A stretch of 64,000 bases of DNA. It comes from Paragordius varius. Lineage: Eukaryota > Animalia > Nematomorpha. The notes under the pieces are model-generated. The model searched no databases, had not been told where the DNA came from, and saw only the letters and a program-made list of their open reading frames with translations. Positions 24,901-63,468 of the stretch are shown piece after piece. Location of the stretch: assembly GCA_964247055.1 (NCBI GenBank), contig OZ176054.1, forward strand, positions 2,418,001 through 2,482,000. Reading direction: 5' to 3'. Positions within the stretch are counted from its first letter, which is position 1, and each line of letters starts with the position of its first letter. The translations under genes were made by a program, and so were the position numbers.

Positions 24901-26221
24901 ACACATAAGAGGAAACTTAATCAAATCCGTTCATTAGGCGATGACACAGTTATATTCGCTGACAGTGTAGACACATTATCGCAAGCTCTGCAATTATTTA
25001 CAACTGAATGCGATAAATACGGATAAAAAATTATCTCTAAAAAAACAAAAGTAAATAAGGTCTGCAAAAGTTTGATTTAAAATTTTTATTAAGGCATTTA
25101 CAGTAAAATTTAATGGAGAATTTGTTATACAGTAGCTCGTGTCATAAAACAAATATTGTTTATAATTAAATTAACAAAATAATTTAAAATTGGAAATGTT
25201 ATATTTCAAAATTATGTTGATTTTTTATACAAAACTGGGTTGCTCATTTTATTATGTGAATAGACCAGAATAAATATGCATATTGTAAGACAAATAATTC
25301 ATACAGGAATGTCATCAAAATAAAATAGTTTATACTCACTCAATAAAAAATCTTCAATAAATATACTAAAATTAAAATAAAAAAATATTCTTAGACACCT
25401 GTTTCACCCAATTTAAAAACCAAAATTAATTGTTGAGCAAAAAATAAAAATATGCAATACCGATTTTTGTTTCAGGAGAGACTTGCTGACAATGATTTTG
25501 TTCTTTTTGAAAACTAATGATAACAAATAAAAGCTACCTTATACAATGTTGACGGATATTTGATCTGAGTAATTTACTTACAGATTTCAAATATAAGAGA
25601 CGTAATGCAATTTCATCGTTCTTAAAAACTGACATTGACCGTAATAATGTAATAATTTTAATTGAAGTAGTTAATGACTCTAATTTGGATAATTCTGTAA
25701 TGCATGTTTCAATTAAATGCAGATACATTGTATGGGCAAATTCAAAAGTTTTCTCAAGATAAATGTTAAATAATACTTCAATATGTTGTGAATTGCTTTC
25801 GGATTTCATAAATTTTAACTGCAAATATAATTTGTATACAGACTCATAAAGTTTATTTTTCAAACAAGTTTGCATCAATTTAGGAATTGTGCAAATATCA
25901 TTAATATTTTTAACATTTTCGGCCGCGAATGTTAGTGCTGTATATCTATTTATAACAGTAAAAAATTACTCATTCCTAATCGCACCCAATTTCCCTTTAT
26001 TGTCAAGAAGCGACTTATGTACAGTTGGCAAATACGCGTTAAATTCTTGGTTTAATATTAATATATCATTTATCTAATCATAGTTAAGCAGAAAAAACTT
26101 TGCTTTTTGCTTCAGTATTTTTAGAAATGATGTTTAATATCGTACTTTGATTGCATTTAACATAATTTCCAATTTCCTTGTCAATTTCACCCAATCTCTG
26201 TTCTATGACCGTAGTATCCAT
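21985..26221 (-). CDS. COG8: Conserved oligomeric Golgi complex subunit 8 (Dor1 family), divergent, ~574 aa
   Basis: Exons (minus) 26221-26099, 26073-25970, 25945-25582, 23715-23449, 23192-22564, 22222-21985 (1725 nt). Matches to recalled COG8: ICTIPKLMQTCLKNKLYE ~ ILEIPQLMDTCVRNSYYE; IITLLRSMSVF ~ VIGYLRRMDVF; VRKHLLDNLSNYNAIF ~ SRVHLFDIITQYRAIF; IPTVLRKFERVFPP ~ VPYLNRCLQVLFPP. The extreme 3' end could include a further exon. Confidence 0.8.
23830..24300 (-). mobile_element. Degenerate 3' fragment of an RTE-type LINE in COG8 intron 3
   Basis: Minus strand reads KSLMLGKMNGARKRGRKTRWMDNI, the same C-terminal motif as LMTGKVEGSRKRGRYKMRWIENL at ~38085-38155. Boundaries approximate. Confidence 0.6.
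24590..25060 (+). mobile_element. Degenerate LINE reverse-transcriptase fragment in COG8 intron 3
   Basis: QAGFRKG (~24601), QVGLCPGCVLF (decayed GVRQGCVLSP) and GDDTVIFADS (decayed YADD); ORF 24820-25026. Confidence 0.7.
25946..25969 (-). other. 24-nt micro-intron (COG8 intron 2)
   Basis: GTAATTTTTTACTGTTATAAATAG. Retention gives GAG TAA; removal gives ...GAIRNEYTALTFAAENVKNINDICTIPKLM, in register with COG8. Confidence 0.85.
26074..26098 (-). other. 25-nt micro-intron (COG8 intron 1)
   Basis: GTTTTTTCTGCTTAACTATGATTAG, with an in-frame TAA. Removal joins ...NTEAKSK|INDILILNQE. Confidence 0.75.
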
Positions 26222-26791
26222 TTCGCATGCGTTAATTTATAATAATAAACATGTGTGCAACATTTTGACAAATCTGTTCCCAGGTATCCAGAAAAGGCTG
26301 TGAAAGTTCATTACCGCCACCGTTATGGAGGAGCCTGTTCGCCTTACCTTTTAGGGTAAGCGGAACGTTACTTCATCCAGTAATATATTCAATGAAACGT
26401 ATAATATCATGCATATGATACGCAAACAAAGAAACATTTAAATTATTGGTTTACCTAAGGCGCTGAAAAACCATCAAATTGACATGATTATTTTTGGATC
26501 GACATACGGTTGAACCTATAAGTAACAATAGGGTATTGTGATAAAAGTAAATATCCTTGGATATAAATTTATTCAAATTTTTATAATTACCAATCGATTT
26601 TTGAAGCAGAAATAAGCATTATATCCAGTTGGTAAGGTTTATGACATAAGTGGTCATAAATTAATGATTAAATTTCAACCAGATTAAATAAGTTTGTAAC
26701 TTAATTTGGTTTTTAATTCAATTCGATGAATAGTGAAATATTTTTTGGCTGTAAAAAAGAATTTGATTTCCAATATAATAATATATCCTTG

Positions 26792-62100: not shown

Positions 62101-63468
62101 TTAGGTACGCTTTTTGATATATGGTACTAATTTTAGTTATTCTCAATACAAATTGGCTTAAGGTGAACATGAAGAGCTTTTTAAATTACAAAATTTTGAT
62201 AAAAAAAATAATTTATAGATAACAATATTATTAATAAATGTTACATTGTAAACAAAATACCGATTTTTTTCAAAAAAACAGCTAATATAATTTCCGCGAA
62301 ACTATCTTTGGAGTGTTTTTTTGCTCCAAAAAAAGTATCCCCCAAAATTAAATGGTTTTGATCCTATAAAAACGTATCTAATCCATGGTTTTTAATTTCA
62401 AACAATTTTTGTAGGAACGGTATAGATTGTATACAAGAGATCCTGAACGTTCACCCATGCAATGGAGTTCGGAATCTATGGCCGGTTTTACTACAGCAAA
62501 TTTTTCTTGGTTACCCGTGAATCCAGATTACACCCACAAAAATGTTGAAGTATTATTCTTTCAAACGGTAATTTTTTAGACGCAAAAAAATGTGTCAGAA
62601 AGTCACCTAAACACCTTTCGAAAATTGATGAAACTTCGAAAAAATCCTGAGTTTCAAACCAAAAATTTGGCATTCGGCCCATGTACTGAACACATTTTCA
62701 CTTTTGTCCGAACTATGCCTCTAGAACAAAAAAGCAAACCTAATCAGTATTCAGGGTATATTTATAATGAGTTTTATTATTACATTTAATAAAATATACA
62801 GGTTTAATTTAATTAACTACTACTTAAACTATCTCATAAAAAGCGCTCAGATGATGAAAAAAAGTTGAATAAATAAAATGTCATATTTTTAGAATAATTT
62901 ATGGAGGAAAATAAAACTGATTAATTGAAAATTAATCAAAAAAAATATATTTTGAGATTTATACCTGATTTAGATACCTGATTATACTAAACTTGGGCCG
63001 TGAACCGGACATTTTTCCAAATTTATCGGGCAGTATTTTAGCGGACTCTAAAGTCCCTGTCGGAAAACCCTTAACTCTTGTTCTAAAAACACCTAACGTA
63101 TCCCAACAATCCGTAAGCAATAATGAAGAAACAAATATTAGTAATTCCACAGAATTTTTGGATCATGTCAATTTGGAAGTGGGATCGAGGATGATATTAA
63201 TAGCTCAGGATAATCAAAAACCTTCTGATGAATTTGAAAATGTTGAAAGCATAGCCTACCTATATGAAATATATAATGACCCTCCATTAATTGCCTCGGT
63301 TGATATTAAAGAGATATTTTTAATATTGTTACAAAAATAGATACTTGGATTGCGATATATATTATTATATATTTTTAGTTGAAAGAAACAACTTCCAATG
63401 TATCAAAGCCTCTGCATAAATTGATATTAAACCCAGGCGATGGTTACATATTTGGATGGGGGCATTAA
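56161..63468 (+). CDS. SLC3A1: SLC3A1/rBAT-like type II membrane protein with a GH13 alpha-glucosidase (maltase-like) ectodomain, ~816 aa, 14 exons
   Basis: Exons 56161-56509, 58127-58306, 58701-58858, 59253-59378, 59638-59763, 59844-59956, 60468-60901, 61090-61139, 61267-61354, 61853-61953, 62415-62549, 62580-62755, 62974-63298, 63379-63468 (2451 nt; last donor uncertain). SLC3 N-terminal motif [11 protein letters not shown]...W..MR, one TM helix, [80 protein letters not shown]. Orthology versus insect-type maltases is unresolved. Confidence 0.85.
58362..58631. mobile_element. Family B Tc1/mariner MITE copy 2 (diverged) in SLC3A1-like intron 2
   Basis: TA|CAGTAAAAATTTGGAGATTATAGG ... TGTCCGTATAATTTCAATTTTAACTG|TA. 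Confidence 0.75.
61521..61786. mobile_element. Family B Tc1/mariner MITE copy 3 in SLC3A1-like intron 9
   Basis: TA|CAGTAAAAATTGTAATTATACGGACAAAACG ... CGTTTTGTCCGTATAAATTTAATTTTTACTG|TA. Confidence 0.85.
62550..62579 (+). other. 30-nt micro-intron (SLC3A1-like intron 11)
   Basis: GTATTATTCTTTCAAACGGTAATTTTTTAG; 3n with an in-frame terminal TAG. Removal gives YTHKNVE|[16 protein letters not shown], the usual GH13 NVE.Q....S.L pattern. Confidence 0.85.

Follow-up and report, generated by a model that had tools for sequence, protein, structure and literature searches.

The window analysed here is a 64,000-nucleotide (nt) stretch of DNA (contig OZ176054.1, positions 2,418,001 to 2,482,000, forward strand), and the subject of this report is a set of ten short GT..AG segments in six of its protein-coding genes: COG8, ATG4, GET4, DNAJC25, PLEKHF2 and an SLC3A1-like gene. 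In each of these genes conserved coding sequence is interrupted, and only the exact removal of the segments restores the reading frame together with a colinear match to the homologue. The segments had been claimed as introns of 22-32 nt in a first-pass annotation of the window, and each was recovered, once in the window and with the same boundaries (Table 1). From the sequence evidence presented below, we consider it very probable that all ten are genuine U2-type (GT-AG) spliceosomal micro-introns in nuclear genes of what is most likely a horsehair worm (Nematomorpha).

Table 1. Positions in the window of the ten candidate micro-introns, one exon enclosed by two of them and one ordinary short intron.
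Feature	Position	Strand	Length (nt)	Phase	Remarks
COG8 micro-intron 1	26074-26098	-	25	0	
COG8 micro-intron 2	25946-25969	-	24	2	
ATG4 micro-intron 1	29212-29235	+	24	1	
ATG4 micro-intron 2	29308-29334	+	27	1	In frame and stop-free
ATG4 micro-intron 3	29437-29468	+	32	1	
GET4 micro-intron 1	40340-40361	+	22	0	
GET4 exon 2	40362-40446	+	85		Flanked by both GET4 micro-introns
GET4 micro-intron 2	40447-40469	+	23	1	
DNAJC25 micro-intron	50766-50794	-	29	1	First intron
PLEKHF2 intron 1	51071-51133	+	63		Ordinary short intron; GT..AG ends
PLEKHF2 micro-intron	51337-51361	+	25	0	Second intron
SLC3A1-like micro-intron	62550-62579	+	30	0	Close to 3' end of gene

All ten micro-introns begin with GT and end with AG, and eight are shorter than 30 nt. 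Their guanine-plus-cytosine (GC) content ranges from 12 to 28% with a mean of 19%. At the 5' site, position +3 is A in seven and T in three, and position +4 is T in 8/10; the 3' end reads TAG in nine, and a polypyrimidine tract is missing. By eye, an A was found 8-11 nt from the 3' end of every micro-intron, although A's are abundant throughout segments of 19% GC and this position is therefore uninformative about the branch point. Removal restores the reading frame in all ten cases. Retention brings an in-frame stop or a frameshift in nine of them; the 27-nt ATG4 segment keeps the frame open if retained, but would add about 10 residues in comparison with human ATG4B.

For GET4, a custom profile was built from 28 full-length homologues gathered by exhaustive search, none of them taken from the window. 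Exon 1 matches residues 27-82 of human GET4, and the exons are colinear on the custom profile at positions 5-64, 65/66-91, 92-142, 139-189, 189-237, 239-262 and 263-289 (the end of exon 4 was shifted by one base to let the following intron start with GT). The spliced model scores 188.5 bits on this profile and is gap-free at both micro-intron junctions (64/65 and 91/92). Its introns measure 22, 23, 676, 2322, 252 and 123 nt, so that two of six are tiny. The best match to the predicted protein among 1.8 billion representative proteins is CAK9300823.1, labelled 'Gordionus sp. m RMFG-2023', and this Gordionus protein was aligned gap-free through both junctions. The exon between the two micro-introns is conserved in it (stretch PSGY[E/D]L...YLE.G[V/I]KK), and skipping that exon shifts the frame and leads to a stop. 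Among 29 GET4 proteins placed in a tree, that of the window is sister to the Gordionus protein (support 100/100), and the pair sit together on a long branch; the two are 55% identical, and the lineage studied here appears well separated from Gordionus. The GC content of the window is 27.4%, compared with 26.93% in the Gordionus montsenyensis assembly. We consider a nematomorph origin very probable. As a side observation, CAK9300823.1 (277 amino acids) lacks 48 residues that match window exon 5 (43775-43918) and are conserved in other animals, probably because an exon was skipped in its annotation.

The ATG4 exons, which lie between 29.2 and 32.4 kilobases, are colinear on the Peptidase_C54 (C54) profile at positions 3-23, 26-54, 67-118, 141-188, 187-213 and 211-275. 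The flanks of intron 2 are contiguous on this profile, with exon 2 covering positions 3-23 and exon 3 positions 26-54, and reading through the 27-nt segment opens a 10-residue gap relative to human ATG4B just N-terminal of the catalytic GWGCMLR motif. Retention of intron 1 leads to a stop; its upstream exon, at 23 amino acids, is too short to score, and its downstream exon is the one that matches C54 3-23. Retention of intron 3 leads to a frameshift and a stop, and its removal leads into an open exon of 187 codons, a later part of which matches C54 67-118. Both flanks of intron 3 match C54, but about 100 lineage-specific residues come directly after the junction. These extra residues (29471-29790, + strand, within one open exon) fall between C54 positions 54 and 67, immediately after the catalytic-cysteine helix, and constitute a lineage-specific insertion. 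An in-frame alternative acceptor at 29480, 12 nt downstream, would give an intron 3 of 44 nt (29437-29480), and since the residues affected by this option sit in the lineage-specific insert, homology cannot choose between the two acceptors.

On PH profiles, the PH domain of PLEKHF2 (which we take to be about 80% identical to the human protein) is contiguous from one half to the other, and a stop appears if the 25-nt segment is retained. One of the four introns located in this gene is tiny. RNA runs that carry the genome's species label were searched over 25400-31399 and 48000-53999. They yielded RNA contigs of a relative, 81-85% identical over PLEKHF2, in which 134 letters separate two anchors that lie 159 letters apart in the genome, exactly 25 fewer. 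In the same transcript a 16-nt first exon is joined directly to exon 2, the 63-nt intron 1 being absent. The PLEKHF2 contigs (runs X4-X6, on 51136-51529) carry the species label of the genome at this level of identity, which suggests that the same-label RNA comes from a cryptic or mislabelled species. The PLEKHF2 cDNA (complementary DNA) belongs to a relative or cryptic species and not to the organism of this genome, in which splicing itself is inferred.

In DNAJC25, the downstream exon begins at position 6 of the DnaJ profile (E = 3.3e-14) and is the only flank with a match. The upstream exon ends in ...NCYE and, as read from the sequence, supplies DnaJ positions 1-5 together with the split codon; an alternative donor giving a 38-nt intron would remove YE, and retention of the micro-intron leads to a stop. 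The SLC3A1-like gene holds an SLC3A2_N domain and Alpha-amylase positions 2-20, 19-79 and 379-417, the last of these in the exon upstream of its micro-intron. Because the alignment of this upstream flank with GH13 structures extends through ...NV, the 30-nt donor is favoured over a 36-nt alternative. Retention again leads to a stop, and the language-model features of the downstream exon are nearest to GH13 C-terminal fragments, which we treat as a lead only.

In COG8, retention of intron 1 introduces stops, and its removal links a 41-codon exon that starts from an ATG to a 35-codon exon. Retention of intron 2 introduces an immediate stop; the 136-amino-acid exon downstream of it matches Dor1 positions 96-208 (E = 2.8e-10), and a later exon matches Dor1 225-278. 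Since this match begins only at Dor1 position 96, approximately 90 upstream residues are needed, and, exons 1 and 2 being without matches, the two COG8 introns are argued from frame continuity and from the need for these N-terminal residues. A language-model atlas was uninformative for exon 2. A possible third COG8 micro-intron of 31 nt was noticed at 25514-25544 (- strand), right after the 136-amino-acid exon, or one of 24 nt if a donor 7 nt downstream is used. The 31-nt candidate would reach a 32-codon open reading frame (ORF) at 25416-25511 and would partly fill the stretch left open on Dor1 (positions 208 to 225), for which Pfam gave no support.

Across the six genes, homologous and contiguous sequence is present on both sides of ATG4 intron 2, GET4 introns 1 and 2 and the PLEKHF2 micro-intron, on one side only of COG8 intron 2, the SLC3A1-like intron and ATG4 intron 1, and on neither side of COG8 intron 1. 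The homology argues strongly for removal of both GET4 introns, two of the three ATG4 introns and the PLEKHF2 and DNAJC25 introns, and moderately for removal of the SLC3A1-like intron, ATG4 intron 1 and both COG8 introns.

Several results weigh against this reading, and part of them would be expected if some or all of the ten segments were gene-model artefacts, in which the true genes would be built from different exons, with longer introns or start codons further downstream, and the GT..AG joins are coincidental. A decoy control was performed over the whole window by counting GT..AG segments, those of 22-32 nt among them, whose removal would join two ORFs each 30 codons or longer, in comparison with nine decoy dinucleotide pairs. 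No enrichment of GT..AG over the decoys was found in any length bin (50 joining segments of 22-32 nt compared with 28-68 for the decoys), and chance joining of ORFs by short GT..AG segments is common in this AT-rich window. With the GT..AG count inside the decoy range, ORF-joining by itself neither finds nor validates micro-introns in DNA of 27% GC. Codon-usage log-likelihood could not tell the small exons from random stop-free windows. For four of the small exons beside the segments no significant match was obtained (COG8 exons 1 and 2, ATG4 exon 1 and the downstream exon of the SLC3A1-like gene), and Pfam and PDB searches with small exons alone were empty for COG8 exons 1-2, ATG4 exon 1, GET4 exons 2-3 and the last SLC3A1 exon. 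ATG4 intron 3 and the SLC3A1-like intron each have an in-frame alternative boundary, which would give lengths of 44 and 36 nt. Further points concern the organism and its transcripts: the same-label RNA runs hold one abundant transcript, PLEKHF2, at 15-19% divergence, and no COG8 or ATG4 transcript was found in them; and the placement in Nematomorpha is drawn from a single gene tree and GC content.

We nevertheless regard gene-model artefacts as a very improbable account of the ten segments. The profile coordinates run gap-free over the junctions in GET4, ATG4 and PLEKHF2, the 85-nt GET4 exon is conserved in the Gordionus orthologue and cannot be skipped without breaking the frame, and the length of the relative's cDNA equals the removal of exactly 25 nt. 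Furthermore, where the position of a break is fixed by homology, chance has little room: the per-position frequencies in the window are 0.042 for GT and 0.039 for AG, so that a GT and an AG at frame-restoring positions would be expected at roughly 1-2% per site with about 10 placements allowed. Finding GT and AG exactly at ten such breaks, each placed by homology to within a few bases, is far beyond chance.

Two DNA data sets were compared with the window over 25400-31399: X1, and X3, which is a different sample with a different organism label. Word depth in X1 is approximately 230-600 on single-copy parts, and depth in X3 is 2-7. An X3 contig covering 25844-26136 spans both COG8 segments with one difference, and a second (record 14, 29265-29479) spans ATG4 segments 2 and 3 with zero differences; COG8 micro-intron 2 is present unspliced in X3 record 10 and in X1 record 1. 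No deleted form of any of the five COG8 and ATG4 segments is listed in X1 or X3, and single-copy depth over them is normal. Four segments, namely the COG8 pair plus ATG4 segments 2 and 3, are thus present unspliced in independent DNA; an assembly artefact was rejected on these grounds, and nothing in the DNA data points to excision. Separately, the genome is present at low depth in X3 and absent from X11, a sample of that study with the same organism label, a contrast that fits a parasite within a host specimen.

These data also bear on the idea that the segments are never removed from RNA by the spliceosome, whether because the genes are pseudogenes, because ribosomes frameshift or bypass, because the segments are excised from somatic DNA, or because they are spliced unconventionally in the manner of IRE1. 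In its favour, the size of the segments resembles that of Paramecium eliminated sequences and of the 26-nt XBP1 intron. Against it stand the normal single-copy depth and the lack of any deleted form in the DNA runs for the five COG8 and ATG4 segments, and the fact that the ten lie in six unrelated housekeeping genes with otherwise intact long exons; of the explanations weighed here we give this the least credence, next to none. Two specific candidates were rejected. Internal eliminated sequences of the ciliate type would have TA ends, which were found in 0/10 segments, and the five COG8 and ATG4 segments are kept in two DNA samples. For an intron of the IRE1/XBP1 type, the CNG|NNG loop rule was matched at 0/20 sites.

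The micro-introns are a minority class, ten of approximately 69 introns by the count of the first-pass annotation, and they are unevenly placed. In nine cases the micro-intron occupies one of positions 1-3 in the intron order of its gene, and seven lie beside another micro-intron (COG8 1-2, ATG4 1-3 and GET4 1-2). The hypergeometric P value for the 5' bias is 7e-6 with that count of 69 introns, and 1e-3 or 2e-2 if 40 or 30 introns are assumed. The other 59 introns had been described as 63-2322 nt long with none between 33 and 62 nt. Five of these lengths were reproduced exactly (676, 2322, 252, 123 and 63 nt) and about six more roughly. The window yielded no supported intron between 33 and 62 nt, a result subject to the small number of verified introns and to the 44-nt option for ATG4 intron 3.

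The first-pass proposal that such tiny GT-AG introns coexist with ordinary ones in an animal genome that is not compacted is supported; the window contains a confirmed reverse-transcriptase element as well as high-copy repeats. A decayed non-LTR (non-long-terminal-repeat) retrotransposon lies at 36374-38207 (+ strand), with RVT_1 at 37028-37519 and adjoining ORFs in different frames. Between COG8 and ATG4, a high-copy repeat at 26800-29000 reaches an X1 word depth of 1.9 million, compared with approximately 250-600 in unique sequence. Many contigs jump about 1540 nt in this repeat, from 27039 to 28580, suggesting that full-length and internally deleted copies of the family coexist. Elsewhere in the window, open frames of 312, 143, 155 and 510 codons at 9200-17432 (+ strand) match no Pfam family, are of low complexity and rich in Ser, Pro, Asn and Gln, and are probably parts of a large lineage-specific gene. 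Rfam and tRNA scans of the window gave no matches.

How introns of this size would be removed was considered in light of the splice sites of the long introns, which have 5' sites such as GTAATT, GTTTTA and GTGTGT and 3' sites ending in TAG or CAG, the same site type as in the micro-introns. The first-pass annotation had proposed a second splicing mode or an altered U1/U2 geometry, a proposal that found no support, given that the same site types occur in the tiny and the verified long introns and that the analogues in other animals are attributed to the ordinary U2-type spliceosome. A distinct mode would work, for example, without simultaneous U1/U2 occupancy, or independently of U2AF, and would make the 33-62 nt gap a steric forbidden zone. 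In its favour, 22-32 nt is too short for the spacing from 5' site to branch point seen in human and yeast, the micro-introns lack a pyrimidine tract, the window yielded no supported intron in the gap, and some human short introns are reported to use SPF45 in place of U2AF (bioRxiv 10.1101/784868). The authors of a 2026 survey of very short animal introns (PMC13644364) likewise call their recognition unknown. Against it, the terminal dinucleotides are identical and the extended sites similar in both size classes, myxozoans with median introns of 22-27 nt retain a canonical U2 small nuclear RNA (snRNA) and U2AF (PMC13644364), flatworm microintrons have no unique motif (PMC6530080), and the length gap is subject to the small number of verified introns and the 44-nt option given above. 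Overall, we judge a distinct mode unlikely.

Ordinary U2-type splicing by intron definition would be the simplest reading, as tiny and long introns share one site type and the analogues keep canonical U2 snRNA and U2AF. On this account the ordinary spliceosome would remove the micro-introns from the pre-mRNA through recognition of a minimal 5' site (GT, then A or T, then T) and a T-rich 3' site ending in ...TAG, with a branch adenosine approximately 8-11 nt from the 3' end and no polypyrimidine tract. The class may have arisen by extreme shortening of 5'-proximal introns, while the remaining introns kept lengths of at least 63 nt or were enlarged by transposons.

Introns shorter than 30 nt have been published in animals only for Dicyema and the myxobolid myxozoans, with medians of 22-27 nt, and in the latter group U2 snRNA and U2AF are conserved (PMC13644364). 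Both lineages have small, compact parasite genomes, and the shortening was tied to parasitism, small body and genome reduction by the authors of that survey, who expected further lineages (PMC13644364). The introns described here resemble theirs in being GT-AG introns of less than 30 nt with a reduced 5' signal of approximately GTA, a minimal 3' signal and A's a few bases upstream of the AG, and the lifestyle is parasitic in each case. They differ in that nearly all introns are tiny in dicyemids and myxobolids and only a minority here, and in that myxozoan genomes are compact and fast-evolving whereas the hairworm genome is transposon-rich.

The layout is closer to that of flatworms. Two intron-length modes are given for Gyrodactylus (about 32 and 58 nt) and for Opisthorchis (37 and 90 nt) in PMC4040987, citing Tsai 2013, and in PMC6530080. 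Flatworm microintrons, in Neodermata and other Platyhelminthes, parasitic and free-living alike, are 5'-biased (concentrated at ordinal positions 1-2 or the gene 5' end) and clustered, have no pyrimidine tract and are missed by default annotation (PMC6530080; PMC4040987). The hairworm introns share with them a short class, apparently discrete, beside ordinary introns, the early ordinal positions, the adjacent clusters and the lack of a polypyrimidine tract, and would likewise be overlooked by annotation software with a default minimum intron length. They differ in being shorter (22-32 nt) and in the next verified size, 63 nt, compared with second peaks of 58-90 nt in flatworms; in addition, GET4 places the organism with Nematomorpha, in Ecdysozoa, and not with Platyhelminthes. 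The background given in the first-pass annotation, which named dicyemids among the organisms with tiny introns, was incomplete, as myxobolids also have introns below 30 nt, and an arrangement in two size classes with 5' bias and clustering is common to parasitic flatworms and the genome described here. The hairworm case is a flatworm layout at dicyemid-like lengths in another phylum.

Two further groups offer partial comparisons. Ciliate introns are all tiny (approximately 25 nt in Paramecium and 15-16 nt in Stentor) and resemble those described here in length, in GT-AG ends, in high AT content and in that retention usually shows as a stop or frameshift, as in nine of the ten here. The differences are that every intron is tiny in ciliates and that ciliates are not animals; we know of no description in ciliates of bimodality with kilobase transposon-bearing introns. 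Nematodes are the sister phylum, and Caenorhabditis elegans has an intron mode of approximately 47 nt and a UUUUCAG 3' site. Nematode introns are AT-rich like those described here, with a T-rich 3' site ending in AG and no strong branch-point consensus. They are rarely shorter than about 40 nt, and a 22-32 nt class is not known in nematodes to us.

Hairworms are said, in the title of a 2023 study by Cunha, to have undergone rampant loss of universal genes. Our literature search found no paper linking Nematomorpha with short introns, although the Current Biology article on gene loss in hairworms may mention them, and the word 'intron' is absent from the Gordionus genome paper. BUSCO scores of hairworm genomes are low, with 71.6% given for Gordionus in that genome paper. 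The warning in the first-pass annotation that gene predictors with a minimum intron length miss such introns matches what was reported for flatworm microintrons (PMC6530080). Gene finders of this kind would break the 5' ends of housekeeping genes like those described here, so that hairworm annotation and claims of gene loss need to be rechecked with the minimum intron set to 15-20 nt.

In our reading, the ten segments are a new instance of a known intron type and involve no new mechanism, and the evidence in the window gives a second splicing mode no support. A bolder version, which we hold doubtful, is that Nematomorpha are the third independent animal lineage with introns shorter than 30 nt and the first in which these form a discrete minority class in a large transposon-rich genome, that the empty 33-62 nt range reflects a genuine steric separation of two modes of spliceosome assembly, and that annotation errors caused by micro-introns account for part of the 'rampant loss of universal genes' reported for hairworms. 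If the micro-introns are genuine, extreme intron shortness would be uncoupled from genome compaction, since the genome is rich in transposons, contains introns of kilobase length and has a GC content of 27%, and 5'-biased, clustered microintrons of the flatworm style would have arisen convergently in Ecdysozoa.

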